A stretch of DNA of 64,000 bases from Obrimoposthia wandeli (lineage: Eukaryota), in contig CDROCS010001089.1 in the NCBI GenBank assembly GCA_977020255.1, positions 620,001-684,000 of the forward strand, in the 5' to 3' direction. Shown here piece by piece: positions 10,729 to 45,761 of the stretch. A model generated the notes under the pieces. That model worked only from the letters and a program-made list of their open reading frames with translations. It was not told the DNA's origin and made no database searches. Made by a program: the position numbers and the translations under genes. Position 1 is the stretch's first letter, and each line of letters begins with the position of its first letter.

Positions 10729-10745
10729 AGCAAAATTTGTACCAA
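10729..10745 (-). promoter_or_regulatory. sigma54 promoter
   Basis: Minus strand TTGGTACAAATTTTGCT, GG-N10-GC. Confidence 0.75.
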
Positions 10746-10763
10746 TACATCTTTGTATTTAAT

Positions 10764-10776
10764 TAAATAATTGATT
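10764..10776 (-). promoter_or_regulatory. IHF-like site between enhancer and sigma54 promoter
   Basis: Minus strand AATCAATTATTTA matches WATCAANNNNTTR. Confidence 0.55.
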
Positions 10777-10852
10777 TATAAGTTTTTAAACAAATATAAT
10801 AAGAGAAACTACTATTTTAAATAGAGTTGAAAAGTATTGTTTTCGAACTTGA

Positions 10853-10867
10853 TTTGCATTTTGCAAA
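10853..10867. promoter_or_regulatory. LuxO-type enhancer box
   Basis: TTTGCA-TTT-TGCAAA, an exact TTGCA-W3-TGCAA match about 110 bp upstream of the -24 element. Confidence 0.7.
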
Positions 10868-10902
10868 GCAGCTCAACATTGGCATTTTTAACTTCTTATG
10901 GT

Positions 10903-11913
10903 CTATGTAAATCCTTTGGGGTTATTTTTTTGCCAGCGCCAGTGATCAGTGATCATTTGTGCTAAATCAGCTTTAGCACTCCAATTTAGCGTTTTGGCAC
11001 TAAAACTCACATCGGCATAACAGGTGGCTATATCGCCTGCTCGTCTATCAACTATTTGCCAAGGTATTGCTCGCTTAGCTATCTCTGCGAAAGTATTAAT
11101 GACTTCTAAAACGGAATAACCTGTTCCGGTTCCTAAATTATAAACCTGCCAGCCCGCTTGTTGTTTTAACCGCTTTAAGGCCGCTAAATGCCCTGCAGCT
11201 AGATCAACTACATGAATATAGTCACGTACCCCTGTGCCGTCTTGAGTAGGGTAATCTCCACCAAATACATTCACTTTATCTAGTTCACCTACGGCAACTT
11301 TAGCGACAAAGGGCATTAAATTATTGGGTACTCCATGGGGATCCTCGCCTATTAAACCGCTGCTATGAGCCCCTACCGGATTAAAATAACGTAAAACAGC
11401 AATACACAAACTATCATCGGCGGCTGCCACGTCTTTGAGAATATTTTCAATCATCAACTTAGTTTGCCCGTAAGGGTTAGTGGCTGATAGTTGCGCCTGC
11501 TCAGTGATAGGCACTGTTTCGGGATCACCATAAACCGTCGCAGAGGAGCTAAAAACGAGTTCTTTACAACCCGAGCGCTGCATAGCATCCAGTAAAGCAA
11601 GCACTGAAATAATATTGTTTTGATAATACATCAAAGGTTTGGCAACAGATTCACCTACGGCTTTAAAGCCAGCAAAGTGAATAACACTTGTTATAGCGTA
11701 ATCTGCAAAAACTTTATTAAGAATCGCTTTATCACAAACATCACCTTCTACACAAACCGGCCTTTTCTGAGTGATTTGAAAGATGCGATCCATCACCTTA
11801 GAGTGGCTATTACAAAAGTTATCTAAAACGATAACATCTTCATTTTTCTCTAACAGTTGTACAACTGTGTGACTGCCGATATAACCGGCGCCACCTGTCA
11901 CTAAAATGGCCAT
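10903..11913 (-). CDS. galE: UDP-glucose 4-epimerase
   Basis: GGAGYIGSH, FSSSATVYG, YGQTK, LRYFNPVGAH, DGTGVRDYIHVVDLA. Confidence 0.97.
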   Translation of the reverse strand: MAILVTGGAGYIGSHTVVQLLEKNEDVIVLDNFCNSHSKVMDRIFQITQKRPVCVEGDVCDKAILNKVFADYAITSVIHFAGFKAVGESVAKPLMYYQNNIISVLALLDAMQRSGCKELVFSSSATVYGDPETVPITEQAQLSATNPYGQTKLMIENILKDVAAADDSLCIAVLRYFNPVGAHSSGLIGEDPHGVPNNLMPFVAKVAVGELDKVNVFGGDYPTQDGTGVRDYIHVVDLAAGHLAALKRLKQQAGWQVYNLGTGTGYSVLEVINTFAEIAKRAIPWQIVDRRAGDIATCYADVSFSAKTLNWSAKADLAQMITDHWRWQKNNPKGFT

Positions 11914-12086
11914 GTTGAGTCCTTTTTTAATGCTAACTGGCTCGTAATAAATATAAGAATTGAGCTAGTTGAAAGTTTGATAATTGCTATTAAATGCCAA
12001 GCGCGTATTTCGATGTAAATGTGAGAGTGGGTGATTCGGTCGATTGAGTTTAAAATTGTCAGTAGAGAAAGCTGCTGCTTTGGTTG

Positions 12087-13097
12087 CTAACTTATTTTCT
12101 TATGCCCTAAATAACTCATCGCGATGCGTTCAATACGCGCATACACTGCTGTCGGTAATAATTTTAGGCATGCACTAATAAACGTTATGCAAGTTCGGCT
12201 CGGCTCTTGCAACAATATTCTAAAATCGCAATATAGTGCGCGATGGATCAGTTTCACAGCATCGAACCGACTGCGTGTTTGTACCGCTCTGCGAGCCATG
12301 TAACGTAATTGGTATGCTTTGGCTAGCTGATAATATTGCTCAAAGAAAGCTGGGTGTTTATCTTGGTTAAGTTGCACAGCTTGCTGCCAAGAGGCGAATT
12401 GCTTTTCAACATTGGCGGATAAGCCACTATCGTTAACACGGTAGTAGGTTAAAGGCTGTGCTATTCCTTCAAACAACCATTGGGTCGACAATGCAATTCG
12501 CGTCCATAATTCGATATCTTCTGATTGTCTTAAATGTTCATTGAAATACATTTTGCGATACTTATCAGTGCCCAATCCGTAATAGCCAACTTCATCCAAT
12601 AATGAACGTCTAATCACTGCAGCGGATCCATTGCCAACAGGGTTTCTACAAAAGATGTGTTGCTGGCTAATGTTATCTAGCTTTGGATATTGGCCGATGC
12701 CGAGAAGCTGTCCCGCTTCGTCAATAAACAGTGAAGGGCAATAGCTCACACCTACATTAGGGTTGTTATTTAAATGCCGAATATGTTTTACGAGCTTATC
12801 TTTTGCCCAATAATCATCCGCATCTAGCAGTGCCACATAAATGCCGCGAGCGGCATCAATGCCGGTATTTCTGGCACCTGATAAACCACGGTTTTGTTGT
12901 GAAATCACTCTGATGCGTATGTCATCAAATTGCTCTACGATGGCCAATGTATTATCGCTGCAACCGTCGTCAACTAAGATTAATTCAAAGTGATGAAAGC
13001 TTTGGCCCAGCACCGACGAAATACTCTGAGCAATATACTTTTCTACGTTATACATAGGGATTACGACTGAAACGGTAGGAGCAGAATTAATATTCAT
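12087..13097 (-). CDS. Glycosyltransferase family 2
   Basis: VSVVIPMYNVE, VDDGCSD, ALLDADD, SEDIELW. Start MNINS overlaps the flippase stop. Confidence 0.9.
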   Translation of the reverse strand: MNINSAPTVSVVIPMYNVEKYIAQSISSVLGQSFHHFELILVDDGCSDNTLAIVEQFDDIRIRVISQQNRGLSGARNTGIDAARGIYVALLDADDYWAKDKLVKHIRHLNNNPNVGVSYCPSLFIDEAGQLLGIGQYPKLDNISQQHIFCRNPVGNGSAAVIRRSLLDEVGYYGLGTDKYRKMYFNEHLRQSEDIELWTRIALSTQWLFEGIAQPLTYYRVNDSGLSANVEKQFASWQQAVQLNQDKHPAFFEQYYQLAKAYQLRYMARRAVQTRSRFDAVKLIHRALYCDFRILLQEPSRTCITFISACLKLLPTAVYARIERIAMSYLGHKKIS

Positions 13098-14373
13098 GAG
13101 ATTTTCTCCGACTAAAAAAAGCAAGATAATGGGCAGCCTTGTGGATTAAACGGTGACCAAAATAAATAGCAGCGCACCACAGCAAACTACTAAAAAGTAT
13201 CACTAGGGCAAAATCCATTGGCTGCTGAGGTGAGTAAATAAATAACAGTGAGAGGCTGATGAAAAGGCACACAAAGCGAGTCACAATTTCGCGGTTGAAA
13301 TTGGCTTTTACCCGTTCGAAACTACAATAACTATCGACAATGATTGATGGCAATGCCACTAAGCACATGATGCTAACGATCGGGATCATGTCGTGCCATT
13401 TTTCATCAAACAGCACGGGTACATAAAAAGGCACCAGCCATGCTTGCACCACGAATAGCATCCCAACGGCCAGGGTAATTAAGTAGATTAAGCGCTGCTG
13501 GCTAGCTAAAGAGCCTTTGCGTTGTAATTTACACAGGAATGGGAATAACGCGCTATTGAATACATTGCTGATGGATTGACTCAAGCCAATGCCAGCGTTC
13601 TTGGCAAAGCTATATAAACCAAATAATTCGGGAGACATGATTTTTGCGGCGATAAAGGTATCAGCATGTAAACGTAAAGCGCGTAACAGCTCGCTACTAA
13701 ACAATTGACCAGAAGTATGTAATAACGCTTTAATGACTTTTAGATCAAAGCCTAAACCGTATGATTTAACATCTATGCAAGAGAACAGCACTAACCATAG
13801 TATCGAGAACACGATTTTACCGTAAGCCACCGCCATGAAGTCAGCATTGAGCCAGGCAAAAAGCGCGATTGAGATGTTTTCCGCTGAAATACAAATGCCA
13901 CTGCGAATGCTAAATTGACGCATATGGTTAGCTCTTTGCAACAAAAATATCTTAACGCTCACCCAAGGGTAAAATAGGTAAATGACCGCCATTACTTGTA
14001 ATAGCTGTACTAAGTTTGGGTTGTCATACCAGTTTGCAATGCTTTGGGCGAGGCAGTATTGAACACTGGCCAGTGTTAAACAAATGACCCATTGAATGGT
14101 GGCGCCATTTTTAGCAAAAGCAGATAAATCTTTGTCATCACAGCGAATAATTTGTGAACCAGCGCCTGCACGCAGCATCAATGCCAACATGTCATGGCAG
14201 GCTAATGCCAACATCGCGGTGCCGTAGGAAACGGCTGATAACTCAACGGCTAATACGATAATAGTGACCACGCGTGAGATCTTAGAAAGCAGCTCGGCAC
14301 TAAACAACCATACAGCGTTAGAAAAAAGCTGTAGCAGTGGATGAAGCATTATTTTTAAATCAGTAACTAGCAT
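13087..14373 (-). CDS. wzx: Wzx-type oligosaccharide flippase
   Basis: Polytopic membrane protein with flippase pattern, inside the EPS operon. Confidence 0.8.
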   Translation of the reverse strand: MLVTDLKIMLHPLLQLFSNAVWLFSAELLSKISRVVTIIVLAVELSAVSYGTAMLALACHDMLALMLRAGAGSQIIRCDDKDLSAFAKNGATIQWVICLTLASVQYCLAQSIANWYDNPNLVQLLQVMAVIYLFYPWVSVKIFLLQRANHMRQFSIRSGICISAENISIALFAWLNADFMAVAYGKIVFSILWLVLFSCIDVKSYGLGFDLKVIKALLHTSGQLFSSELLRALRLHADTFIAAKIMSPELFGLYSFAKNAGIGLSQSISNVFNSALFPFLCKLQRKGSLASQQRLIYLITLAVGMLFVVQAWLVPFYVPVLFDEKWHDMIPIVSIMCLVALPSIIVDSYCSFERVKANFNREIVTRFVCLFISLSLLFIYSPQQPMDFALVILFSSLLWCAAIYFGHRLIHKAAHYLAFFSRRKSHEY

Positions 14374-14412
14374 ATAACCCCACTTAATCTCAGTGATGTG
14401 TATAAATTAGTT

Positions 14413-14479
14413 CATTACTGTGCGGTTAAAAAATGTAAGCTTGCTAGGACAGCAACAAAAATTAGACCGCACACTATTG
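14413..14479 (+). repeat. Repeat family 2, internally deleted 67-bp copy
   Basis: CATTACTGTGCGGTTAAAAAATGTAAGC...CAACAAAAATTAGACCGCACACTATTG matches both ends of the 25180, 52801 and 57910 copies. Confidence 0.75.
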
Positions 14480-14495
14480 AACTTAGTTAAAGCTT

Positions 14496-14512
14496 TGCAA
14501 ATTACATTCCAA
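14496..14512 (-). promoter_or_regulatory. sigma54 promoter of the wzx-GT2(-galE) operon
   Basis: Minus strand TTGGAATGTAATTTGCA, GG-N10-GC. Confidence 0.7.
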
Positions 14513-14597
14513 TATCCAAAAAAAAGCCTAAAACACTATTTTACAAGGGAAAATAGGGTTTTAGGCTTTAGTTGTAAAATAATTAGTTAAGGTGAAT

Positions 14598-14642
14598 ATC
14601 GCATTATGCAACAGTGATATATAGAAATTCGCATTTTGAAAA
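14598..14642. promoter_or_regulatory. Two LuxO-type enhancer boxes
   Basis: ATCGCA-TTA-TGCAAC (14598-14612) and TTCGCA-TTT-TGAAAA (14628-14642). Confidence 0.6.
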
Positions 14643-14648
14643 ATTACT

Positions 14649-14810
14649 TAGTGCTCATCCTGAAACGGGGTCGTCGCGAGAGCGTCTCAATGATTCAAGA
14701 TACGTACTACTAGATATGGGCGTTTGGTTATTCCAAACAATTAGTTCTAGTAGTGAGTAGATTGAGTTAGTGAGCGTTCGCAGTAGACATCCATTTCTGG
14801 ATGGGCACTA
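14649..14810 (+). mobile_element. MITE family 1, copy 2
   Basis: Near-identical to 2964-3126. Its terminal CTA is the TAG stop of the sigma54 regulator. Confidence 0.85.
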
Positions 14811-16337
14811 CTTAGTCTGCAATTCTTCCCACTGTTGTATTTTTCGATATAGAGTTGATGGGCTCACTTCTAGCTCACTAGCGGCTTTCACTATATTGCC
14901 TTCACACTGATCAATCATTTGCTTAATGGCGCGGCGCTCAACGGCGGCTAACGATGTGGATTCGGCGACCAATAATGCTGCATCATTTGGTGTGCTATGA
15001 GCCAGTGATTGCGGATTGACGTTTGATGAAGATGGAAAAGATGAATTCAGAGTTGGCGATTCACTACCATGTGCTTGAACATCGTTATGATTGGCTACCT
15101 TCGGCTGATCAACACTGGTGCGCCTGTCACTGCCACGCCTCTCTAACTGGCTCGATAATATGTTACTTGATATTAATGGCCCATCCGACATGACAACGGC
15201 ACTATGAATGACGTTTTGTAATTGCCTAACATTACCAGGCCATGGGCAGCTCAAAATGAGTGCTTGGGCATCAGATGAAAATCCAGCAAAGTCCTTTTCT
15301 TCTATATCGCTGTAGTAACTTAGAAAATGTTCAGCGAGCTTTAAACTGTCGTTTTCACGTTCATGTAAGGGTGGTAAAAACAGGGAGATAACATTTAATC
15401 GATAAAATAAATCTTCTCTTAGCTTTTTATCAGCAATGGCTAAATGAGGGTCTCTGTTGGTGGCGCTAATAAAACGAATATTAGCGCACTCCTCTTTGCT
15501 GCTGCCCACTTTCTGAAATTTACCATCTTGAATGAAGCGCAATAACTTCGCTTGCAAATTGATGTCCATTTCACCTATTTCATCTAGAAATAAGGTCCCG
15601 CCATCCGCTAAAGACGCAGCACCATCGCGATTAGCCACCGCACCCGAGAAAGCACCTTTTATATGGCCAAATATTTCTGATTCCATTAACTCAGAGGGGA
15701 TAGCCGCACAGTTAAGCGCAATAAACGGCTTTTGGGCGCGTTTACTTAAACGATGAATAGCCTGCGCAGCAACCTCTTTTCCAGAACCACTAGGGCCGGT
15801 AATAAACACCGAGGCATTACTAGGAGCGCATTGCTCAATTGAAGAATAAACAAATTGCATCGCGACAGAATCACCAATGAAGCCTTCAAAATTATCTTTT
15901 CGATAGTGTTGATATTGCTCTATGGTACGGCGCATTAGCGTGCGTTCTGCAAGTACTTGCTGTAATTGCAGTGCTTGTTTTAATTTGATGATTAATTCGA
16001 AGTTATCCCAAGGCTTTTGTAAATAGCCCCAAATATGACCATCATTAATTGCCGATAAAACCATCTCCATGTCAGCAAACCCAGAGAGGATAATGCGCAC
16101 TGTTTCAGGCGTGATTTTTGCGACTTGCTCAAGTAGCTCGCTACCGTTCATTTGCGGCATTCTCATATCTGAAACGATAATATCTACCGGCGCTTGGTTA
16201 ATAATCTCTAATGCTATTTTACCGCTTTGTGCAGTTATTATTTCGGCATCCATCTTACGTGCGATACGTGCAAGCGCGCGCAAAATTTCAGGTTCGTCAT
16301 CGACGAATAATATTCTTGGCCCATTAAATTTCTGCAT
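14808..16337 (-). CDS. sigma54-dependent response regulator (REC-AAA+-HTH), LuxO/SypG-like
   Basis: GPSGSGKE Walker A, ESEIFGHIKGAFSGA, FLDEIGEM, WPGNVRQLQN, HTH VSPSTLYRKIQQW. Confidence 0.92.
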   Translation of the reverse strand: MQKFNGPRILFVDDEPEILRALARIARKMDAEIITAQSGKIALEIINQAPVDIIVSDMRMPQMNGSELLEQVAKITPETVRIILSGFADMEMVLSAINDGHIWGYLQKPWDNFELIIKLKQALQLQQVLAERTLMRRTIEQYQHYRKDNFEGFIGDSVAMQFVYSSIEQCAPSNASVFITGPSGSGKEVAAQAIHRLSKRAQKPFIALNCAAIPSELMESEIFGHIKGAFSGAVANRDGAASLADGGTLFLDEIGEMDINLQAKLLRFIQDGKFQKVGSSKEECANIRFISATNRDPHLAIADKKLREDLFYRLNVISLFLPPLHERENDSLKLAEHFLSYYSDIEEKDFAGFSSDAQALILSCPWPGNVRQLQNVIHSAVVMSDGPLISSNILSSQLERRGSDRRTSVDQPKVANHNDVQAHGSESPTLNSSFPSSSNVNPQSLAHSTPNDAALLVAESTSLAAVERRAIKQMIDQCEGNIVKAASELEVSPSTLYRKIQQWEELQTK

Positions 16338-16635
16338 AACTCACCTTATTACATCCAGTAATATGAGCAAACGTAGCACAACTTTTCTTAACAACGCCAA
16401 TAACAAAATATTGCTTACTAAAACAGTACCACTTAGTTTCGGGATGAGAGCTACCGAAGGTAGTGCCTTAAAATCGTTGAAAAATAAAAAAGAATGAAGC
16501 TCGCTCTCTCTATATTTTTGAACTATCTCATTTACTACATCCATTATCAAATCTAAGCAGCTGTTCTCTTTACTTGCACTGTTTCTTCTTAGTATCGCTA
16601 GCTGCGTTCGCAGGGCTCTGTGATATTCAAATTAC

Positions 16636-16650
16636 GTTGCAAAATGCAAA
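16636..16650. promoter_or_regulatory. LuxO-type enhancer box
   Basis: GTTGCA-AAA-TGCAAA, an exact TTGCA-W3-TGCAA match. Confidence 0.7.
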
Positions 16651-16753
16651 AAAATTCTTATTTCGCAACACTAACTCACACAATTAATATTCAATTCTTA
16701 TCTTTTTCTCTTTAAATTTATTTAAAAACAATGTGTTACATAAATAAAAAATA

Positions 16754-16770
16754 TTGGCACATGTTAAGCA
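16754..16770 (+). promoter_or_regulatory. sigma54 promoter of the WecB/sugar-transferase operon
   Basis: TTGGCACATGTTAAGCA, GG-N10-GC; IHF-like AAACAATGTGTTA at 16726-16738. Confidence 0.7.
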
Positions 16771-16811
16771 ATGGTATCAACAAGACCTTAAATAAATAAG
16801 GAGTTAACACC

Positions 16812-18095
16812 ATGAAAAGTCAAACTCAATCACTCGAAACGACAAGGGTCACTTTAAAACGTGAAAAACTGATTAGTGCTAGCTTATTGCCACGTATATT
16901 CGCGCTTGCGCTGGTGGTTTTTATCTCGCCAATTGTTGTTACTAATTTAATCATTGCTTTTTTTAAAGGTAATACGGTTTTATTTAATACCAAAAAACAA
17001 GATGCACTGGGTAGAACAGTATTGCTGCATGCCTTTAGTGGTGGTTTTTTCCGAAAAAGCGCATGGCTGTTCGATATCGTCAATGGTCATTTAAGTTTCA
17101 CGGGCGTTCCTCTAACTCATTCGTTAAAGCGTGCTGATCAATATGAAATACGTCGTAAATATTTATCTACGCCTGGTATCTTTAGCTTATTCGATTTACA
17201 TAAAAGCAGCGGGCTTGCAGTGGCCAATGAGAAACAGCTTTTGATACAACAGCTCAACGGATCTGTTTTACAAAACGCCGGCTTAATTATCAAAAGTATC
17301 CTGTGTTTATGCCTGTACTCACGTAATACTAAAAAACTTAACAATGGCGCTAACATTACGTTATTTGGTTTAAATATTACTAATTCAACTATCTCAGAGG
17401 CGGTTGATTGGGTGGTATTAGCACCGCGCAAAGCATCTCCTAATATTGGTTTTTATGTTAATGCCAACTCCATTAATTTAGGTTTGAGTAAACCTGCATT
17501 CATCAAACAGTTACAGCAAGCTGATACGTTATTTGCCGATGGCTCAGGCATGAGGATGGCGGCAAAGAGCGCAGGTTATCAGTTAAAAGATAACAATAAC
17601 GGAACCGACATGTTGCCCCATTTGTGTTGTAGTTGTATTAGTAACCAAAAATCTCTTTTCCTGTTAGGGGCAAAACCCGGTGTCGCCCAACAAGCTGCTG
17701 ATAATTTAACCAGCCAATATCCACAATTAAACATAGCGGGTGTACAGCATGGCTATACACCTGCAGATAAGACTGACGAATTAATCACGAAAATTAATGA
17801 TAGCCACTGCGATATTTTACTGGTCGCTTTGGGCTCACCCGTTCAAGAAGCATGGGTATTGAAGCATCGCAGTGACCTGAAATGCCAAACTATATTAGCG
17901 GTCGGTGGCCTGTTTGACTTCTATTCAGGTGAAATATCGCGCTCGCCAATGTGGTTAAGAGAGCTGGGATTAGAGTGGGTATGGCGTCTTATGAAAGAGC
18001 CTAAAAGTAAATTCTACCGTTATGTAATAGGTAATCCATTATTCTTATTTCGTATCCACGTATTAGGCTTAGCGTCTAAAGGAGCAAGATTATGA
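16812..18095 (+). CDS. WecB/TagA/CpsF glycosyltransferase with an N-terminal degenerate sugar-transferase-like region
   Basis: C-terminal ADGSG, NGTD, LGAKPGVA, LGSPVQE, VGGLFDF, LGLEWVWRL. Confidence 0.85.
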   Translation: MKSQTQSLETTRVTLKREKLISASLLPRIFALALVVFISPIVVTNLIIAFFKGNTVLFNTKKQDALGRTVLLHAFSGGFFRKSAWLFDIVNGHLSFTGVPLTHSLKRADQYEIRRKYLSTPGIFSLFDLHKSSGLAVANEKQLLIQQLNGSVLQNAGLIIKSILCLCLYSRNTKKLNNGANITLFGLNITNSTISEAVDWVVLAPRKASPNIGFYVNANSINLGLSKPAFIKQLQQADTLFADGSGMRMAAKSAGYQLKDNNNGTDMLPHLCCSCISNQKSLFLLGAKPGVAQQAADNLTSQYPQLNIAGVQHGYTPADKTDELITKINDSHCDILLVALGSPVQEAWVLKHRSDLKCQTILAVGGLFDFYSGEISRSPMWLRELGLEWVWRLMKEPKSKFYRYVIGNPLFLFRIHVLGLASKGARL

Positions 18096-18772
18096 ACATG
18101 CACACTTTTGATAAAATGATCCACAATGTTAACTTTTTTCACCCACAAAAAACGAAAGCCGTTAGTTATGGGCATCGAGGATTGCCCATAATATTGCAGC
18201 AGATAGCTGCTGGCATTGCATTATTATTGCTTAGCCCGCTAATTCTATTAGTGATGCTGCTGATCAGAATTGAGAGCCCAGGTAGTATTTTATTCTCGCA
18301 AATAAGAGTAGGAGAGCATGGCCGACATTTTAAAATGTATAAGTTTCGTTCCATGTATTTAGTAACGGATCCTCGTTATCAAGAACCTGATCCAAGCACT
18401 AGTTCTCGTGAAGGGGTGTGTAAAAAATACATCAATGATCCGCGTATTACCGTGATCGGCAGGTTTATTAGAAAGTACTCAATTGATGAATTGCCGCAGT
18501 TGTTTAATATTGTCAACAGAGATATGTGCTTGGTAGGGCCGCGTCCAGCTTTAGCTGTTGAAACTTACGCTTATGATTACGAAGATCAAGCAAGATTGTT
18601 TTCAAAGCCAGGCTTAACAGGATTGTGGCAAGTCTCAGGCCGCGCAGATACTGATTTTACGCAGCAATTACACTTGGATCTATCTTATATTAAACAGCAA
18701 AGTATCTGGTTGGATTGTAAAATTATTCTGTTAACCGTACCTGCCGTACTCAGCGCAAAAGGCGCATATTAG
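18092..18772 (+). CDS. Priming sugar transferase (WcaJ/SypR-like)
   Basis: YKFRSM, DPRIT, RKYSIDELPQL, VGPRP, KPGLTGLWQVSGR. Confidence 0.92.
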   Translation: MNMHTFDKMIHNVNFFHPQKTKAVSYGHRGLPIILQQIAAGIALLLLSPLILLVMLLIRIESPGSILFSQIRVGEHGRHFKMYKFRSMYLVTDPRYQEPDPSTSSREGVCKKYINDPRITVIGRFIRKYSIDELPQLFNIVNRDMCLVGPRPALAVETYAYDYEDQARLFSKPGLTGLWQVSGRADTDFTQQLHLDLSYIKQQSIWLDCKIILLTVPAVLSAKGAY

Positions 18773-18905
18773 TTAGGTTTTTTGCCCACCTTTGTAGGCG
18801 AATTTTTGTATCGTTTTAACTATATGCCCGCATAAACTGTACTAAAAGATAGCATAAACACATCACGGCTAACGGGCTTGGAGCACACAAAGAATGATGT
18901 ACATG

Positions 18906-21562: not shown

Positions 21563-21701
21563 GAGACCTTTGCACAAAGTAGCGAGCGACAGTGAGACAA
21601 GGCAAAAACAAGCGAAAAACCGGAGTTTATGCCTATAAATGAGGATTTTGAGCTTGTTTTTAACGCCGTATCACTGAGTGCAGTAATTGTGCAAAGGTCT
21701 C
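21563..21701. mobile_element. MITE family 3 (139 bp) with IS1106/IS5-like ends and an AACTT direct repeat
   Basis: TIR GAGACCTTTGCACAA / TTGTGCAAAGGTCTC; AACTT at 21558-21562 and 21702-21706. Confidence 0.8.
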
Positions 21702-22948: not shown

Positions 22949-22956
22949 GAGGCATC

Positions 22957-25179: not shown

Positions 25180-25316
25180 CATTAGTGTCCGGTTTAATTT
25201 TTGTTGTTCTATAACTCATTGATTTTACGTTAAACACCAAATTTCAGAATTAACTATGCTAGAAAACCGCAAATCAATGAGTTAGAGAGCTTACATTTTT
25301 TAACCGGACAGTAATG
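25180..25316 (-). repeat. Repeat family 2 copy (137 bp; TIR CATTRSTGTCCGGTT)
   Basis: CATTAGTGTCCGGTTT ... AACCGGACAGTAATG; reverse orientation relative to 57910-58062. Confidence 0.8.
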
Positions 25317-26655: not shown

Positions 26656-26995
26656 TTTAAATGATTAGAAGACTTTAAGTGATTTATTTTTTGAAGTTTT
26701 AGGTCAAGGGATTAAAGATATTTAAGGGCTTTCGTCTTCGTCGAGTTCATTTCTTTTGAGTGGCCAAAGCCAGACGAAAGACACTTGTTGCCGAAACAGA
26801 TCCTGCGCTTGCAGTAAAATTATTGGCCGCTCGTAGAAACTTGCGTCATGGCGCACTCGCTCTACGCAACATCCTGTTGCTCCGCTTCAATAATTTCACC
26901 CAAAGCTCCGGCGGCAATACAAGGGATTCAGGCAGCTTCGTAGCTAGGTTCGAGAGCAGTAGTTTTTCCGTCTATATATTGTACTAATAATAGAG
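26656..26995 (+). repeat. Repeat family 4, copy A (~340 bp, palindrome-rich)
   Basis: Core 26847-26995 is near-identical to 37224-37372. The left part matches 37084 onward and, reverse-complemented, about 29990-30105. Confidence 0.85.
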
Positions 26996-27372
26996 GAAAA
27001 ATCCGAAAACCTAAAAAGTATTTCCTACAGCGTCTATTCAAAACAGCATGCTAATAATTAAAGTTCCGGGAGGATCTAGGTTCGTAGAAACTATAAATGG
27101 TCAAAAGATAGTGCGTAGAACCGATTCTTTTTTGTATTTTAGTTCTGATAAGAAAAAATACTTTTGATTTTATAGGGTAGTGGCACCTTAATAGAATTCT
27201 TTGAGGAAAGTTATGAGTATTAAAAGCTATTGGATTCGTAGTGGCGAAGAAGGCAATTAAAGAAGTAGCTCTTTTTGACTAATTTGCCACTACTATTAAA
27301 GTTGTTTGTTGTGATGAAATGTATCTATTGTTGGGTTGGGTTGTTTTTCATTAAGCAACGCCATAATTTTAT

Positions 27373-29665: not shown

Positions 29666-29723
29666 AGATATGGGACAGTCACTTTTAAGAACGAAGCCAT
29701 TAAGGTTTTATAGCTCCTTCTGT

Positions 29724-30105
29724 TCTATTAGATAAATAGATAGACAGAAGCACTATTACATTCGAATCAAACTACGAAGCTGCCTAATCCCTTGTATTGC
29801 CGCCGAAGCTTTGGGTGAAATTATTGAAGTGTAGCAACAGGATGTTGCGTAAAGTGAGTGCGCCATGGATGGCGTTTACGAGCAGCCAATAATTTTTTTA
29901 AGCGCAGGAAGTAATCGCTTTAATGAGTAATTCAGCTTTCTTTCATGTACAGGATGTACGGTATTAAGCGGTGCCATGGATGGCAAAGAGCGCTTTGGTT
30001 CGGTTTCTTTTGGCCACACAAAAGAAATGAACTCGACGAAGTCGAAAGCCCTTAAACATCTTTAATCTATAGGCCTTAAATCATAAAAAATAAATCAGTA
30101 AAAAT
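29724..30105 (-). repeat. Repeat family 4, copy B (inverted relative to A)
   Basis: Reverse complement contains GCCATCCATGGCGCACTC, GCAACATCCTGTTGC, CAATAATTTCACCCAAAGC, GGCGGCAATACAAGGGATT and GGGCTTTCGACTTCGTCGAGTTCATTTCTTTTG. Confidence 0.85.
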
Positions 30106-30243
30106 ATTTTGACCTAAGAGATTCATATCTCCGCTTTATATCAACTACACATCCACAATCTAAAAATCTCCTCTATCACCTACAAACCAACCTATTTATC
30201 ACGCTACGCAAAAAGCTAATTTCAAAGAAACGATGTTTAGCTA

Positions 30244-37083: not shown

Positions 37084-37372
37084 TTTAAATGATTAGAAGA
37101 TTTTAAGTGATTTATTTTTTGAGGTTTTAGGTCAAAGGATTAAAGAGGGCTTTCATATGACTTTCTTTGGCGACCAGAAAGTAAGCTCGCCCTACATTGC
37201 CAAAAGGTCTCGTAAACGCCATCCATGGCGCACTCGCTCTACGCAACATCCTGTTGCTCCGCTTCAATAATTTCACACAAAGCTCCGGCGGCAATACAAG
37301 GGATTCAGTCAGCTTCGTAGTTAGGTTCGAGAGTAGTAGTTTTTCCGTCTATATATTGTGCTAATAATAGAG
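37084..37372 (+). repeat. Repeat family 4, copy C
   Basis: Shares the left end and the 149-bp right core with copy A; the middle differs. Confidence 0.85.
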
Positions 37373-37746
37373 AATAAATCTAAAAGTCTAAGAGTATTTA
37401 GTTGTAAAAAATGGTTGTCCCTTTTAGTTCTTATTAGAGAACGTACTTTATTTCCTATATAGCGCAATGACTTGATCCTGAAATCACACGCTATTGTATT
37501 AAAGCGTGTGCTTTTTAAGATACTTCTCTTACGAGCATTTCGTGCTAAATATCTCATCATAGGTTTAAGCGAAATGTCTACTTTGTGTCATCGAGGTAAA
37601 TAGAGGATATCCCGAGAGATTGTTCTACTTACAGTGAGTACAATATATTAAGTATTAAATATATTAGTTACATAAATGCAAGTAAGTGGTGATTCTGGTG
37701 CTTATCAGGCCAATAGTTGTTTGGGAGTCCTTTAGTTTCAGTACTC

Positions 37747-38367: not shown

Positions 38368-38496
38368 AAATATATACCCTTAATAAGATCAAAGAGAACA
38401 ATGTAGGGTCTTTTATGGAGGAGTTCTTGTATGAAATTGCAGAATAGTATTTTTTCTTTATCGCTTTAAGTAGCATAGCAAATCTACTAAAGGGAG

Positions 38497-39300: not shown

Positions 39301-39700
39301 TAGTAGAATCGCCTTTTTTCATGTGTTTAATAAATCAATTTGATTATCAGGATATAGCACAGGCTTATTTAACCTATTAGATCCATATAGTAAATGAATA
39401 ACTTGTAATGAACACAACGACGGCTAGTTATTTATAAGCTAACTGCTTTTCTTCTAGCAAGAGATGAGACGATGCAAAAGAAAAGACGCCAAAGAACTAA
39501 ATAGCTTGCCTACTAGTAAAAGGGCACTAAAAGTAGTTTCTGAATGGACACAAGTATCTCGAGTCACTCACATTTTTATACTAAGAATATTGAGAAAATC
39601 ATAAATATTGAGTAGTGGGGCAGTGCTAATGAGGCTTGTCGGTGAGAGTTTGATTACCTCTGTTAGTGAAGTAATCAAATTGGAGTTTCTGACTAAATAA

Positions 39701-42220
39701 CTAACTAGGTAAGTAACGTTCACTCCAGCTGGTAGCTGCCACACTTTGGCTGAGCATGTCCTTGATTTGAGTTTGGCTAAAATCGAGAGATTCGAGCAGT
39801 GTTAGTGTATCGGTACCATATTTGGGCATGGTACATGGCAAAACAACTTTTGCTTGTTGCAGGCGAATAGAATTAGGTGCGATCAAATCGACAGGGTAGC
39901 CGCAGGGATGGTTTGGGTAATGAACAAATGCGACGCTGCTCTCACCAGCCAAATCAACAGAGTCACGGCTGTCCATCAGGTTATGCTCGCGTAACTCTCC
40001 CATAGTGACCAGCGGCTGGCAGGCGATATCTATTTGGCGGCATAATGTTTGCCAATGACTCAGTGGCTCAGTTTGAAATAGCTGCTCCAGTATCACCTCG
40101 GCTGAGGCGTTGTCGCTCATATCAAGCCCTGGAGCAATAGTGTCACAGAATATGTTTAGTTGTAGCGGCAGGTCGAGCGCGAGGAAGAACCAGCTATCTG
40201 CTGCGCGATAGCAGCGATACAGTGCGTGAGCCCCTTTAATATCGCGACCACTAGGTTCATTGAATGCTGCGCGAGCGGGGTAATCGTACATAAAAGGTGT
40301 TTGGATTAACTGCCCAGCGGCGATCAGCGAACTGCGTGCGAGTGAGCCGCCATTGCCTTTAGCACGATTGACCAGCGCCACCGCGATCGCTTGAGCGGCA
40401 CAGTAGCCACCGAGTACATCGATAGTGCCAAAATGAGCATGCTCTTCGGGTGTCTTCATAGAGCCACCGAACCTGCTCATAATGCCAGTCGTCGCCTGCA
40501 CTAAGTCATCGTAGCCTAAGTGGTTACTACGTGGTCCAATTTTTGGCCCGCCGTAGGCATCAAACTGGCAGAGAATGATTTCTGGATTAATCGCTTTTAA
40601 CTCTTGTAAAGAGAGGCCTAGACGCTGTAACTGTGCATCACTGGCATTGACGGTGACAATGTCAACTTGCGGTAGTAAGCGTTTAATGGCCTCGCGTCCT
40701 TGAGGGCTCTTTAAGTCGAGGAGCAGACTTTTTTTTCCTTGATTGGCTTGAATGCCGAAGACCGTACTATTCCAAGGATCTAAAGCAGGTACGGGAGGGT
40801 CGATACTGATGACCTCGGCACCAAAACGCGCCAATGTGCCCGCAATGGTAGGTCCGGCAATAACATTGGTCAGGTCGAGGATAGTGATTCCATCGAGTAG
40901 TGCACCAGGCTCACGTTTCTCAGTGTTGATACCGCTGCGAGGTTGGCTTTTCCAGCGTGTTAAAATTTCTGTTAATTCTGGGTCGGATAATGTAATTTCC
41001 TGCGCTGCACGCTTGTCTAATACCCCTTCATCCTCTGCAAGCCAACAAATATTACCCAACTGGCGCATCGTGCCATATTTTGGCTCTTCCACTTCTATAA
41101 TACTACCGCAGGCGAGAGCGTGTTCACTGTTGATCCACTCGCGGGTTAGTTGGTGTGCGCAGCCTGGGACTCCAGCAATACCAAAAATTTCTTGCCACTG
41201 GTATGCGCTCTTCGTGATAAATACTGCTTTCATCTTGTCTGATACTAATGCTGCCCATTGAGGTGATAGAGGGTAGGAAACCAAAGTACACTGTGCATCA
41301 TTGGGCCAATTCTCTTTGTCTAAATAGGCACTGTGAGTGGGAATGCCAAGCGCTTTGATCTCATCCCACAGCCCAAGTGCTTCAAGGCACGCTTGAGGGT
41401 GACGGGTGTGCGATGAGCACACTGTATAGAAAGGGCGGTCATCTGCGCATTGGTAGGTGCGATAGAAGGGGTCGAGAAACTCTTGCAATCCCTGATAGTT
41501 CATATCGAAGGCTTCTCCCTCGCGCTTGCGTCGCTCAATTTCCAGTTCACGCGGTGATTTGTAGCGATCTGGCAAGCCGTGAATGTGCATTGAGTTGTAC
41601 GCCAAACCTTCCATTAAAGCGGCAGAAATGGGAACTTCAATGGTTTCACCGCAGCCATTGTTATGGCGAGCAAAAAGAGCGAGAGTTACGGCGGTGGCAC
41701 CGAGCACTGATGCGTAAGCAGAAGCCAGCGGCAACGGTGAGAAAGAAGGATTTATACCCATTAAAATGCGGTTTAAGCCCATATCGGTATACTGGCCAAC
41801 GGCGGCGGCAATGACACCCTCCCATGCAGGAATGGATGCCATTTCACTATCTTTTTCTGCAAAGCCCGGTAGAGATAAATATACCAGTTCCGGGTTATCC
41901 GTGCGGCACTGTGCAGCGCAGAGGCCTAAAGATTTCATCACGCCTGGGCGAAAATTTTCCACCACTACGTCAGCATTAACTATCAATTGGCGGGCACAGC
42001 TCAAGCCCTCGAGTGATTTTAAGTCGAGAGTCAAGCGTTGCTTACCCCGATTCAGCACCGCATCGGCTGGGTTGTTCCAGCGCGGGCCGCTAGGAGGGTC
42101 GATATGAATGACTTCAGCTCCTTGATCGGCCAGCATCATCGCCACCGCAGGACCAGCTATGTATTGACCAAAATCAACGACGCGATAGCCACTAAGCGGC
42201 CTTTCAGTTTGTTTGTTCAT
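39701..42220 (-). CDS. DddD-like double-domain class III CoA-transferase, paralog 2
   Basis: 839 aa; same motifs as paralog 1 (DFGQYIAGPAVAM, NRILMGINPSFSPLPL, GYDDLVQA, PEEHAHFG, YLPS). Confidence 0.85.
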   Translation of the reverse strand: MNKQTERPLSGYRVVDFGQYIAGPAVAMMLADQGAEVIHIDPPSGPRWNNPADAVLNRGKQRLTLDLKSLEGLSCARQLIVNADVVVENFRPGVMKSLGLCAAQCRTDNPELVYLSLPGFAEKDSEMASIPAWEGVIAAAVGQYTDMGLNRILMGINPSFSPLPLASAYASVLGATAVTLALFARHNNGCGETIEVPISAALMEGLAYNSMHIHGLPDRYKSPRELEIERRKREGEAFDMNYQGLQEFLDPFYRTYQCADDRPFYTVCSSHTRHPQACLEALGLWDEIKALGIPTHSAYLDKENWPNDAQCTLVSYPLSPQWAALVSDKMKAVFITKSAYQWQEIFGIAGVPGCAHQLTREWINSEHALACGSIIEVEEPKYGTMRQLGNICWLAEDEGVLDKRAAQEITLSDPELTEILTRWKSQPRSGINTEKREPGALLDGITILDLTNVIAGPTIAGTLARFGAEVISIDPPVPALDPWNSTVFGIQANQGKKSLLLDLKSPQGREAIKRLLPQVDIVTVNASDAQLQRLGLSLQELKAINPEIILCQFDAYGGPKIGPRSNHLGYDDLVQATTGIMSRFGGSMKTPEEHAHFGTIDVLGGYCAAQAIAVALVNRAKGNGGSLARSSLIAAGQLIQTPFMYDYPARAAFNEPSGRDIKGAHALYRCYRAADSWFFLALDLPLQLNIFCDTIAPGLDMSDNASAEVILEQLFQTEPLSHWQTLCRQIDIACQPLVTMGELREHNLMDSRDSVDLAGESSVAFVHYPNHPCGYPVDLIAPNSIRLQQAKVVLPCTMPKYGTDTLTLLESLDFSQTQIKDMLSQSVAATSWSERYLPS

Positions 42221-42412
42221 AGCGAACTCCTCAAATTGTATAGTTCTCCATCATAAGCAATCTTGAATTTAGCAAATAGCGGATAATTCAGGACAGTATG
42301 TACGATATTATTTGACACTTAATTATCTGAATTTAAGCGACAATCGTGTTATAAATCACTTGAATCATCATAACTAAGCGATATTGTCGTATGACAGTGA
42401 CTGAGAGAAACT

Positions 42413-43276
42413 ATGGATGTCTGGTCTATCAAAACATTTTTAACGCTCGCTGAAGTTAAGCGATTGAACGAATGTGCTCAACTATTATGCATCACTAAAT
42501 CAGCGGTTAGTTCGCGCATTAAACAGCTTGAGAGGCACTTGGATCAAGAATTGTTCAGCCGCAGTAGTCAGGGAATGTCACTCACTCCTGCCGGCCGTCG
42601 TTTTCATCAGCACGCTCAGGTACTGCAGCGTGGCTGGGAGCAAGCCAAGACGGATGTAAAGTTAGATGCTGGCAGCGATGGTATTCTGCGTATTGCTACT
42701 CACACCACGCTGGCGCAAGAATTTTTACCTGAATGGGGACGGCTAGTAAAAAATAAAAAACCTAACGTCACACTGCACATGAGCGCGGACTACTCGGTGG
42801 AAGTGGTTAGCCAAGTGGCTGCTGGAAAGCTCGATATTGGTTTGGTATTTGTTGCAGACACCACTTCAGGCCTCATAGTCGAACAAGTGTGTATCGATGA
42901 TTTGATCATGGTGTCTAGCCAGCAATATGCGGTAGCTGATGTAAAACCTGAGGATTATCTCTATATCGATTGGGGCTGGGGTTACAACGCGGCACATAGC
43001 GAACGTTTACCGCATTTACAATATAGTTTGCAGAGCAGTGGTCTAGGAGATATAGGCTTGTCTTGGCTGCTTTCCAATGGAGGTAGTGCCTATCTACCAA
43101 AACGGATAGTGGTACAGCACTTAGCGCGGGGGCAGTTATTCGCAGTGCGTGATGCACCTGTTTTTAATCGTCCTATTTTTGTTACTTATGCTCGTGAATC
43201 ACACAATAGTGAATTGTTGAGTTGTGCCCGACAAGTTTTGAGCGAGTACATTGAGTGTGGCGGTTTTAAGGCTTAA
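42413..43276 (+). CDS. LysR family regulator divergent from paralog 2
   Basis: HTH ITKSAVSSRIKQLE..LF.R; LysR substrate domain. Confidence 0.92.
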   Translation: MDVWSIKTFLTLAEVKRLNECAQLLCITKSAVSSRIKQLERHLDQELFSRSSQGMSLTPAGRRFHQHAQVLQRGWEQAKTDVKLDAGSDGILRIATHTTLAQEFLPEWGRLVKNKKPNVTLHMSADYSVEVVSQVAAGKLDIGLVFVADTTSGLIVEQVCIDDLIMVSSQQYAVADVKPEDYLYIDWGWGYNAAHSERLPHLQYSLQSSGLGDIGLSWLLSNGGSAYLPKRIVVQHLARGQLFAVRDAPVFNRPIFVTYARESHNSELLSCARQVLSEYIECGGFKA

Positions 43277-43336
43277 GCAGCTATATGCTTTTATTTGGTA
43301 GCGCGAGCTACCGGTCGGTAGTAACGGACTGCTAAT

Positions 43337-43371
43337 AAAAAGCCCCGCCGATAATGCTCGGGGCTTTTTTT
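43337..43371. terminator. Bidirectional rho-independent terminator
   Basis: AAAAAGCCCCG...CGGGGCTTTTTTT between the convergent LysR and BCCT genes. Confidence 0.85.
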
Positions 43372-43419
43372 AAGTTAAGGTAACCTATCTGGCATCACCC
43401 TGAAAATATTCATTTAGTG

Positions 43420-45096
43420 TTACTGCCTTTCCTCTACCACCAGATTTTCACGGTTATCGTCAACGGTAGATCTGGCTTCTTCGAACAGCGATTTCAATAC
43501 TGCCAAGGTCATGATAATAATGATAATGCTCAAAGGCAGGGCCGCGGCAATGTTGGCGGTTTGCAGAGCACTGAGCCCTCCGGATACTAACAGCACTGCG
43601 GCGACTAGGCCGATAACGACCCCCCAAAACACTCTGAATTTATGTGGAGGCTCTTCGTTGCCGAAAGAGAGAATGGTGGTTAATACTAACGTACTGGAAT
43701 CAGCGGAAGTGACGAACCAACTGAGGAGGAGAAAGACCATAGTAGCAGAGAGAATCCATCCAAAAGTACCATCACCAGCAATGCCGTCTGAACTAGCGAA
43801 GAGTGCTGCGGGTAAGTTCCACGCCATGACAAGATCTATGATACCAGCACTGCCAGGACCGTTGGCTGCATGTAGCTCTTGATAGAGTGCGACACCGCCG
43901 AAGATAGCTAGCCAGATGAAGATGATAGTAGTGGGGACAAAGAGTACGCCGATTATAAATTCGCGTAAGGTACGTCCTTTAGAAATACGCGCGATAAACA
44001 AACCAATAAAAGGTGCCCAAGCTATCCACCATCCCCAGTAAAAAACTGTCCAGCTGTTTTGCCATTTCGCAGGTTCTTTCTCCTCTGGAAACCATAGTCC
44101 CATCTGCAAAAAATTGGCCAAGTAATCACCTAAAGAATCGGCAAAAATGGTCAGAAGCCAGGTAGTGGGGCCGCCAAAGAGAAAAAATGCGACTACTACC
44201 ATTGAAATAATAATATTCCACTCTGAAATCACTTTGATGCCTTTTTTCACTCCCGATATCGCGGAGATGATTGAAATAATTGAGATAACCGCGATTAACA
44301 GTAATTGAGTAGCGGTACCCGGGTCTGTGCCGATTAATCGCTCTAAGCCAACGGCCATTTGGCTGACGCCCAGACCTAGAGAAGTCGCGACACCAAAGAC
44401 ACAACCGAGTACGCCAAAGAGGTCGACTGCATGGCCTATCGGTCCATAAATACGATTGCCAATAAAAGGATAGAGACACGAGCGCAGTGCCAGCGGCAGT
44501 TTTTTACGATAGGCGAAATAAGCTAGTGACAGGCCTACTATCACATAAACCGCCCAGCCATGAAACCCCCAGTGAAAGAATGTGACGCGCAGTGCATCGA
44601 CCGCACGTTCATAGGTCAGAGCAGTGGCGCCTTCCATATCTGCGTATGGATTGTTCGGGTAACCAAAGCCGGCACTATTATCGAGGTAGAAGATAGGCTC
44701 AGCAACGCCGAAGAATAAAATTCCGATGCCGATGCCCGCTGAGAAAAGCATTGAAAACCAAGCAAAGTTACTGAATTCAGGGCGGCTGTCATCATCGCCT
44801 AAACGAATTTTACCAAAGGGGCTGAGAACGATAAAAAAGCAGATCGCGATCAGAAAAACCACAGTAATTAGGTAATACCAACCAAAAGTAACTTCTATCC
44901 AGCCTCGAGCGGTACCGAAGATGCTTGCTGCTAATTTAGTATTACTACCAGTGAAGGCTACAAAAGCGAGCACTAACAGTGCTGAAGTAATAGTCATACC
45001 TTTGTGCATGTGTTTAAACAAGCCCTTACTTTCAAGTAACTGTGCTTTGAATATACTACTGTCTACGCTTTCGGGCTGTGGCCGGTTTGACGCCAT
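43420..45096 (-). CDS. BCCT family transporter (DddT-like candidate)
   Basis: WFSMLFSAGIGIGILFFG, FFHWGFHGW, WTVFYWGWWIAWAPFIG, FVTSADS. Confidence 0.93.
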   Translation of the reverse strand: MASNRPQPESVDSSIFKAQLLESKGLFKHMHKGMTITSALLVLAFVAFTGSNTKLAASIFGTARGWIEVTFGWYYLITVVFLIAICFFIVLSPFGKIRLGDDDSRPEFSNFAWFSMLFSAGIGIGILFFGVAEPIFYLDNSAGFGYPNNPYADMEGATALTYERAVDALRVTFFHWGFHGWAVYVIVGLSLAYFAYRKKLPLALRSCLYPFIGNRIYGPIGHAVDLFGVLGCVFGVATSLGLGVSQMAVGLERLIGTDPGTATQLLLIAVISIISIISAISGVKKGIKVISEWNIIISMVVVAFFLFGGPTTWLLTIFADSLGDYLANFLQMGLWFPEEKEPAKWQNSWTVFYWGWWIAWAPFIGLFIARISKGRTLREFIIGVLFVPTTIIFIWLAIFGGVALYQELHAANGPGSAGIIDLVMAWNLPAALFASSDGIAGDGTFGWILSATMVFLLLSWFVTSADSSTLVLTTILSFGNEEPPHKFRVFWGVVIGLVAAVLLVSGGLSALQTANIAAALPLSIIIIIMTLAVLKSLFEEARSTVDDNRENLVVEERQ

Positions 45097-45617
45097 AAGT
45101 TAATCCTCTGTTTTTGTTTTTCTTCTGTGCGGGCAACGCTCGCAGGCTTTGTAGCCGATGCCATCATAGAGGTAGGTGAAAGGGGTGAATATCGAAAATT
45201 TATTGACGCAGTGTCCGATTATTTTAGTCCCTTCGCGAAAGAATAGAGATTGACTCACAAAGTTTACATATAACGTTAAAACACTAATCCCTAGGCGTGA
45301 TTACGTTACGAGTTCTAAAATTTATCAGGTTAATTTCGAATAGTTAAAATTCATGCCAAAGCACACAGTTCACTTAAAGTTTGCCTTATGTCAGTTTTTA
45401 ACCTTATTGCACTGTAGGGGCTTGAATAAGTATACGATCACAACCACTCTTTTACCGCATGCGCATGCTTTAAATCAGATACAACCTATGAATACTTACA
45501 AGAGGCGCTATGTGGGATCAAAGCACAAGCCACTCTCTTTTATCAATATCCTAACTCCGCCTTCTTGCCCAGCATTATTGCCTAAAAACCAACCTGTTTA
45601 TCACACTACGCTACCCC

Positions 45618-45694
45618 CACGCAAAATGCGAAAAGCTAATTTCTAGTTCGCAAAACGAAAAAATCCATCAAAAAACACTTTCGCATTTCACAAA
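45618..45694. promoter_or_regulatory. Cluster of degenerate LuxO-type boxes
   Basis: CACGCA-AAA-TGCGAA (45618), TTCGCA-AAA-CGAAAA (45647), TTCGCA-TTT-CACAAA (45680). Confidence 0.5.
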
Positions 45695-45744
45695 TAAAAA
45701 CAAATAAATAGTTTTATATCAGTGGTTTAAAATAATTCTATAAG

Positions 45745-45761
45745 TTGGTACGCTTTCTGCT
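45745..45761 (+). promoter_or_regulatory. sigma54 promoter of the EPS export/polymerisation operon
   Basis: TTGGTACGCTTTCTGCT, GG-N10-GC; IHF-like TATCAGTGGTTTA at 45717-45729. Confidence 0.7.

Follow-up and report, generated by a model that had tools for sequence, protein, structure and literature searches.

Which regulator governs the exopolysaccharide (EPS) operons of this locus, and does it act on them directly or through a small RNA? The stretch analysed (the window) comprises 64 kb, without any N, from contig CDROCS010001089.1 (positions 620,001 to 684,000) of the Obrimoposthia wandeli assembly GCA_977020255.1, and it probably holds a Wzx/Wzy-type EPS locus that belongs to a Colwellia-like marine bacterium and has a sigma-54 control circuit of its own. 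An earlier sequence-only reading of this DNA had claimed four promoters with exact GG-N10-GC spacing, a palindromic box upstream of each and a site like that of integration host factor (IHF) at three of them; it had proposed that a locally encoded protein with a LuxO-like helix-turn-helix (HTH) activates EPS operons directly, through the LuxO operator and with no Qrr step. All these elements were found in our analysis, and it seems likely that the local activator directly drives the four promoters. Direct activation of EPS operons by a LuxO-like protein is largely supported in silico, except that one promoter appears to head a sensor operon instead and that the protein is not LuxO itself.

The four promoter sites lie 54 to 138 nt upstream of open reading frame (ORF) starts with exact spacing, and each stands, as expected of a sigma-54 promoter, 30 to 150 nt before a gene with a putative enhancer upstream:

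10729-10744, minus strand: sigma-54-type promoter TGGTACAAATTTTGCT (GG-N10-GC) before the presumed sensor operon, here called the 10745 promoter
14497-14512, minus strand: sigma-54-type promoter TGGAATGTAATTTGCA (GG-N10-GC) of the flippase-GT2-galE operon (GT2, family-2 glycosyltransferase)
16755-16770, plus strand: sigma-54-type promoter TGGCACATGTTAAGCA (GG-N10-GC) of the WecG-PGT operon (PGT, polyprenyl glycosylphosphotransferase)
45746-45761, plus strand: sigma-54-type promoter TGGTACGCTTTCTGCT (GG-N10-GC) of the Wza operon

The strict pattern TGGC-N8-TGC found none of the four, because the sites read TGGTAC, TGGAAT and AAGCA, and a looser pattern was needed. At 60 to 125 bp upstream of each promoter there is a box with the consensus T(T/C)GCA-W3-TGC(A/G)A. 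The four boxes (10853-10867, 14598-14612, 16636-16650 and 45618-45632) differ from the LuxO box TTGCAWWWTGCAA at 0, 1, 0 and 3 positions, the fourth being a perfect CGCAAAATGCG palindrome, and extra TTCGCA-type sites stand at 14629, 16661, 45647 and 45680. The distance from box center to GG is 117 bp at the 10745 promoter, 95 and 125 bp at the flippase promoter, 113 bp at the WecG promoter and 122 bp at the Wza promoter. Loci of relatives that were compared with the window carry the labels L001 to L086; L085 is the closest, its activator being 92% identical.

10854-10866, no strand: exact box TTGCATTTTGCAA, 117 bp before the GG of the 10745 promoter, exact in L085 too
14599-14641, no strand: putative flippase enhancer, with TCGCATTATGCAA (14599-14611) and TCGCATTTTGAAA (14629-14641) at 95 and 125 bp before GG
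16637-16669, no strand: putative WecG enhancer in the divergent activator/WecG region, with an exact TTGCAAAATGCAA (16637-16649) and the half-site TTTCGCAAC (16661-16669)
45618-45693, no strand: putative Wza enhancer, with CGCAAAATGCG (45620-45630), TTCGCAAAACGAA (45647) and TTCGCATTTCACA (45680), about 122, 93 and 60 bp before GG

IHF-like sites (consensus used, WATCARNNNNTTR) occur at three of the four promoters, all of them centered 24 to 27 bp before GG; two are exact and one carries a single mismatch. The flippase promoter lacks such a site, and the terminator hairpin of the activator gene occupies that place.

10764-10776, minus strand: exact IHF consensus AATCAATTATTTA, 27 bp before GG
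16726-16738, plus strand: IHF-like site AAACAATGTGTTA, one mismatch to WATCARNNNNTTR, 24 bp before GG (read from the sequence)
45717-45729, plus strand: exact IHF consensus TATCAGTGGTTTA, 24 bp before GG
14517-14566, minus strand: hairpin and T-run, likely the terminator of the activator gene, between flippase enhancer and promoter (read from the sequence; weak hairpin-type Rfam matches)

Taken alone, the single patterns are not enriched in the window, but their combination is. A sigma-54-like site with a YGCAWWWTGCR box 40 to 220 bp upstream occurs four times, against a mean of 0.022 in 1000 dinucleotide shuffles, none of which gave three such pairs. Box matches with at most one mismatch number three in the whole 64 kb (two exact TTGCAWWWTGCAA sites and one with a single mismatch), and all of them fall inside the four promoter regions, as expected if they are LuxO-type upstream activating sequences. 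These patterns were picked after the sites had been seen, and therefore more weight falls on conservation in relatives. Their EPS promoter regions (5.5 kb) contain 10 boxes with no more than one mismatch and the remaining 147 kb contain 3, which makes the boxes 77-fold enriched. When all 4+4 palindromes with any spacer were counted with no prior pattern, TGCA-N3-TGCA came jointly top by regions hit (7); it ties with TAAA-N4-TTTA, which is A/T only, and leads among the palindromes that are not purely A/T.

The spacing of these sites is kept as well. The flippase boxes stand 125 and 95 bp from GG in both the window and L081, 124 and 93 bp in L001 and 94 bp in L083, and the upstream regions of seven loci align in three conserved islands, namely, the two boxes and TTGGAAT-N5-TTG, with the remaining DNA diverged. 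The hairpin and T-run between enhancer and promoter also recur in L085, L081 and L083, and in many loci the promoter lies 54 nt from the ATG. For the WecG promoter, the box is 113 bp from GG in both the window and L081 and is exact in L085 also, while TGGCAYnnnTTAAGCA occupies the promoter position in L003, L081, L083 and L085. The Wza promoter reads TGGTAYGCTTACTGCA in L081 and L083 and TGGTACGTTAAGTGCA in L003; the relatives' Wza promoters have TTGCA-type boxes at 71 to 112 bp, and the IHF site keeps its position in L081, L008, L010 and L018. The counterpart of the 10745 promoter in L085 is TGGTATGCATTTTGCT. Conservation of the boxes in orthologous loci, on which the sequence-only reading had staked its proposal, thus holds with the spacing of boxes and promoters in at least seven genera.

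Compared with the other relatives, the window and L085 have a flippase leader (14385-14470 in the window) that is about 84 nt longer, the added stretch containing an inverted repeat (tgtgcggt...accgcaca). Similar short palindromic units with AATCAATGAGTTA recur at 25180-25316, 52833-52845 and 57942-57954.

The protein that would act at these sites is encoded between the flippase and WecG promoters:

14808-16337, minus strand: sigma-54 enhancer-binding response regulator of 509 aa (Pfam Response_reg, Sigma54_activat, AAA_lid_14 and HTH_8)

It has the architecture of sigma-54 response regulators, with a D57-bearing receiver, an AAA+ domain with intact Walker motifs (GPSGSGKE and DEIGEM), a loop that has S for T (GAFSGA) and a Fis-type HTH; the C terminus reads ...EVSPSTLYRKIQQWEEL, and the HTH_8 end is VSPSTLYRKIQQW. 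The best NCBIfam model is that of LuxO (NF041946), which the activator matches at 459.8 bits and its orthologues at 460 to 474 bits, without reaching the cutoff of 800. The last 70 residues alone also match the LuxO model best (58.6 bits versus 37 for the next model, DhaR), in agreement with the LuxO-like HTH claimed before, and the best solved structure is LuxO 5EP0, slightly ahead of NtrC1. The receiver is of the RpfG/NosR type. No luxU (histidine phosphotransfer protein) gene lies directly downstream of the activator gene, where the terminator hairpin and the flippase operon are found. We rejected true LuxO, PrsR, AtoC, NtrC and GlrR as identities of the activator, as every curated cutoff was missed.

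Orthologues of 52 to 94% identity occur in Colwellia, Thalassotalea, Pseudoalteromonas, Alteromonas, Paraglaciecola, Brumicola, Marinibactrum, Oleiphilus and Oceanospirillaceae. In a maximum-likelihood tree of 62 LuxO-like proteins, which took in unnamed relatives only and left out authenticated LuxO and SypG, the activator falls into a clade of 22 that is split from the other 40 at 100% support (Shimodaira-Hasegawa-like approximate likelihood ratio test, SH-aLRT) and sits on its own long branch. Proteins of Aeromonas, Enterovibrio and Grimontia were rejected as LuxO or SypG references for this tree; they score 640 to 680 bits on the LuxO model, under the cutoff, and are taken as unnamed LuxO-like proteins because of these scores and because a hybrid kinase or no luxU adjoins them. 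GAFSGA is present in all 22 clade members and in the 120 best database matches, whereas the other 40 have GAFTGA; the recognition-helix core S-T-x-Y-R-K...W (PSTxYRK..W) is invariant in both groups compared. EPS genes lie within 6 kb of the activator in 20 of the 22 clade members, and the same number keep the activator|flippase-GT2 and WecG-PGT|Wza... order. JGI names label several clade members "LuxO," and judged by their sequences these automatic labels are misleading.

Exact LuxO-type boxes also adjoin GAFTGA-type LuxO-like activators of Aeromonadaceae, Lysobacterales, Methylococcaceae and Rhodospirillales (L021-L080), often 117 to 153 bp before sigma-54-like sites. Examples are L033:722, L039:3213, L058:3055, L063:2929, L072:1947, L055:11448-11502 and L059:11413-11465, and in two Aeromonadaceae loci three boxes follow one another at intervals of about 20 bp. 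Because exact boxes adjoin such activators outside Vibrionaceae, the LuxO box seems to be a family-wide operator. It is possible, though we would not yet rely on it, that this box serves a large group of LuxO-like enhancer-binding proteins with PSTxYRK..W in Gamma- and Alphaproteobacteria and is not a specialty of Vibrio quorum sensing; direct control of envelope and EPS operons would then be common and the LuxO-to-Qrr arrangement derived. The EPS clade would in that case be a separate unnamed family (GAFSGA, RpfG-type receiver, TTGA at -12 tolerated) that links both EPS synthesis and an HD-GYP regulator to a kinase dependent on a binding protein.

Three of the promoters stand before operons of EPS synthesis and export, two of which flank the activator gene, flippase-GT2-GalE on the minus strand and WecG-PGT on the plus strand:

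10903-14373, minus strand: flippase-GT2-galE operon (NCBIfam)
13087-14373, minus strand: MOP/Wzx flippase (NCBIfam)
12087-13124, minus strand: GT2 (NCBIfam)
10903-11913, minus strand: UDP-glucose 4-epimerase GalE (NCBIfam)
16812-18772, plus strand: WecG-PGT operon (NCBIfam and Pfam)
16812-18095, plus strand: WecG/TagA-family glycosyltransferase
18092-18772, plus strand: PGT
18906-45096, no strand: insert of unrelated genes, about 26 kb (Pfam; contiguous loci in relatives)
45800-51747, plus strand: Wza operon with a Wza-like exporter, a 463-aa protein, a Wzy-like polymerase, a polysaccharide pyruvyl transferase and a GT2 (Pfam and NCBIfam)

The 463-aa protein of the Wza operon is Wzz-like and membrane bound, with no family match in Pfam or NCBIfam, and the five genes of this operon have the identical order in L081 and L083. 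The sequence-only reading had taken in a span of 35 kb. This part needs revision: where metagenome contigs carry 76%-identical activators, they hold the whole gene set without interruption, in the order GT2 < pyruvyl transferase < Wzy < 463-aa < Wza < | PGT < WecG < | 266-aa GT8-like < | activator > | flippase > GT2. L081, L083 and L003 have a contiguous EPS locus, Colwellia, Pseudoalteromonas and others keep the same blocks, and L001-L018, L081, L083 and L085 all have activator > flippase > GT2 in this order. Because relatives hold the same gene set contiguously, the two EPS clusters of the window are, on this comparison, one locus split by the insert; the PGT gene and the Wza enhancer lie on its two sides in the window and about 290 bp apart in relatives.

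The insert itself codes for two DddD-like CoA-transferases, a BCCT carrier, a urea transporter and other transporters, besides AraC, TetR and LysR regulators (Pfam). It has no tRNA, and no integrase or transposase domain was found among the ORFs scanned; only internal repeats were seen. Three noncoding repeat copies of about 170 to 450 nt, 84 to 95% alike and one of them inverted (26656-27014, 29718-30108 and 37084-37391), may be like miniature inverted-repeat transposable elements. Two further differences in gene content concern the EPS blocks. Between activator and WecG, relatives have a 266-aa gene with a DxD motif and weak GT8/nucleotide-sugar-transferase matches (L081:8637-9437 and L083:8721-9518) and with its own GG-N10-GC site (aGGAATaaataTTGCt); it is absent from the window, where we read it as lost. 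In L085, galE is cut to a short N-terminal remnant (L085:4720-4790), and the box and promoter after the remnant are intact.

Judged by the genes downstream, the 10745 promoter probably serves the sensor operon and not EPS genes:

6150-10669, minus strand: probable sensor operon (Pfam and NCBIfam)
10259-10669, minus strand: 136-aa protein with a predicted membrane helix
9199-10044, minus strand: PhnD-like periplasmic binding protein
7510-9153, minus strand: HAMP histidine kinase
6150-7436, minus strand: receiver/HD-GYP response regulator, above the NosR-family cutoff

We considered and rejected the possibility that the 136-aa ORF is spurious, because it has two homologues of 64 to 69% identity and the same length, both followed by a PhnD-like gene (L085 and L086); the kinase is also present in L086. 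Box, IHF-like site and promoter are all found in L085 before the genes for this homologue (hyp137) and PhnD. A Qrr-like RNA behind the 10745 promoter was likewise rejected, as there is no Rfam match and the downstream ORF has real homologues. A search with permissive E values on 9.9 to 17 kb and with gathering scores on the whole window found no Qrr or other Rfam RNA, in line with the claimed absence of a Qrr step.

In eight relatives the genes for kinase and HD-GYP regulator are neighbors of the activator gene, and in three of these they form an operon immediately upstream of it; a box and a sigma-54 promoter of its own precede the HD-GYP regulator gene in two Alteromonas loci. The receivers of activator and HD-GYP regulator are 43% identical. 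Because of this neighborhood, the Alteromonas sites and the receiver identity, the kinase is likely the input for both the activator and the HD-GYP regulator, and we infer that the 10745 promoter provides feedback on the sensor module. The HD dyad of the HD-GYP regulator reads RH (LRHIGK), with the GYP motif kept (HREYLDGSGYP), and the protein may bind cyclic di-GMP (c-di-GMP) rather than hydrolyze it.

The best sigma-54 consensus match of the window lies outside the four promoters; it is TGGTACTATTTTTGCA at 5613-5628 on the plus strand, with a glyoxalase-family gene (5737-6120) 124 nt downstream. At 5511-5523, 97 bp before the GG of this match, stands TTGCAAAAGCCAA, a box with two mismatches. 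The site may be a fifth target of the activator or a target of another activator.

From these elements, the following circuit can be proposed. Phosphorylation of the activator on D57 would most likely come from the HAMP histidine kinase nearby, working with the PhnD-like binding protein, and the phosphorylated activator would bind the inverted repeats T(T/C)GCA-W3-TGC(A/G)A 60 to 125 bp upstream of the promoters. Looping would be aided by an IHF bend near -50 at three of the four, and the activator would spend ATP to open sigma-54 holoenzyme complexes at all four, the sign of regulation presumably being positive. Three promoters would directly drive all EPS synthesis and export operons, with no small RNA between activator and targets, and the fourth would drive the presumed sensor kinase and the HD-GYP regulator, which would add feedback and a link to c-di-GMP.

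Several observations weigh against this circuit. The Wza boxes of the window are three mismatches off the consensus, the flippase promoter of most relatives has TTGA and not TTGC at -12 (GG-N10-GA), the loop of the activator is GAFSGA instead of the canonical GAFTGA, and rpoN is not in the window. The pairing of kinase and activator is drawn from neighborhood and receiver similarity, and read-through from the 10745 promoter to the kinase, about 700 nt and several genes off, depends on the presumed extent of the operon. Moreover, a true LuxO elsewhere in the cell could use the same boxes.

This last point leads to the first alternative, in which a genuine quorum-sensing LuxO encoded elsewhere in the genome mainly or also uses the boxes; LuxO would then target the EPS operons directly, with the local activator as a co-user or competitor. 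The boxes equal the LuxO consensus, the recognition-helix core is invariant in the LuxO-like proteins compared, and SypG, which can act through LuxO-type sites, shares overlapping sites with LuxO at the qrr1 promoter (PMC10162802). However, in all related EPS loci, from at least seven genera, the boxes are found together with the local activator gene, and we regard this first alternative as improbable.

There is a similarly small chance that the locus derives from syp by divergence, its activator being simply the Alteromonadales orthologue of SypG. The logic is the same, in that an EPS locus with several sigma-54 promoters encodes a LuxO-like activator, and some boxes (TTCGCATTTTG) are one mismatch off the SypG enhancer pattern; against this, the gene content differs, in that the window has no STAS-domain SypA, SypE or hybrid SypF and has other glycosyltransferases and a pyruvyl transferase, and the receiver is of a different type (RpfG/NosR). 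The published SypG enhancer consensus is TTCTCANNNTGMDWN and that of the LuxO box is TTGCAWWWTGCAA (PMC10162802). The former has no exact match in the window and 17 one-mismatch matches versus 16.5 expected, which is chance level; three of these overlap TTCGCA-type boxes. The operator in the window is thus of the LuxO type, as had been claimed.

A third alternative, which we hold to be quite unlikely, is that the GG-N10-GC sites are not working sigma-54 promoters and that sigma-70 reads the operons while the palindromes bind the local activator or another factor, which would act as a classical repressor or activator, as with VpsR. The noncanonical GAFSGA loop and the flippase promoters of relatives without the -12 C would fit it, and VpsR-type proteins illustrate that activators of the same architecture can act without sigma-54. 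Yet, amid diverged surroundings, the -24 TGG and the -12 TTG do not vary and keep a fixed distance to box and ATG, the AAA+ motifs are intact, and a consensus scan gives only weak sigma-70-like matches (9 of 12) among those nearest the starts. Finally, AT-rich palindromes and GG-N10-GC strings could have come together by chance in intergenic DNA that is itself AT-rich. No single pattern is significantly enriched, and the patterns were chosen afterwards, but this explanation is hardly credible given the joint occurrence in the window and the enrichment and kept spacing in relatives that were not used to define the patterns.

Direct control of the four promoters by the local activator is therefore the explanation that we prefer. 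It provides a testable model of EPS regulation for Colwellia, Pseudoalteromonas, Alteromonas and their kin, which are major colonizers of marine biofilms and particles, with the activator, the operator, four promoters and a candidate kinase named. In the literature on Pseudoalteromonas, Colwellia and Alteromonas, we found no described regulator of this EPS locus. A practical consequence is that LuxO-type boxes outside Vibrionaceae cannot be read as evidence of quorum-sensing control.

Compared with known systems, the circuit shares with LuxO/LuxU/Qrr of Vibrionaceae the architecture of the activator, the best family model and the upstream activating sequence TTGCAWWWTGCAA. It differs in the score (460 bits versus the cutoff of 800), in the lack of an adjoining luxU, in its presumed protein-coding EPS and sensor targets, and in having no Qrr in the window. 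PrsR/PrsK of PEP-CTERM/exosortase EPS loci is reportedly another sigma-54 response regulator system tied to an EPS locus (TIGR02915). The activator scores 347.3 bits on that model, under its cutoff of 502.6 and with the DNA-binding end uncovered, and no exosortase-specific model gave a trusted-level match among the gene products scanned. VpsR of Vibrio cholerae, an activator-like regulator of the EPS (vps) locus, is among the solved-structure matches (7v2b) and works without sigma-54; the activator reaches 154 bits with it versus 310 for LuxO, and the window has both the loop and -24/-12 promoters. One report describes BerB, a c-di-GMP effector, and RpoN as regulators of the Bep polysaccharide cluster in Burkholderia cenocepacia, which is the same logic of enhancer-binding protein and RpoN acting on an EPS cluster (PMC5552954). 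The activator of the window differs from BerB in its phospho-receiver and its LuxO-type DNA-binding end.

The closest parallel is SypG/syp of Vibrio fischeri, where a locus-encoded sigma-54 response regulator, itself LuxO-like (PMC10162802), directly activates several EPS promoters, as the activator appears to do here: the window too has a sigma-54 response regulator inside an EPS locus with several sigma-54 promoters. There are also differences. Among the window products scanned there is no SypA (STAS)/SypE partner switch and no hybrid SypF kinase, and a classical HAMP kinase with a PhnD-like binding protein is present; the glycosyltransferases are others, and there is a pyruvyl transferase. 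The enhancer is a LuxO-type palindrome and not TTCTCANNNTGMDWN, the receiver is of the RpfG/NosR type with an invariable GAFSGA loop, and the system is found in Alteromonadales, Oceanospirillales and Cellvibrionales, not in Vibrionaceae. By analogy, we infer that the mechanism is that of SypG/syp, in which a locus-encoded LuxO-like activator switches EPS operons directly, and because locus-encoded sigma-54 activators of EPS genes are already known (SypG, BerB and others), the gain is one of breadth, not of principle.

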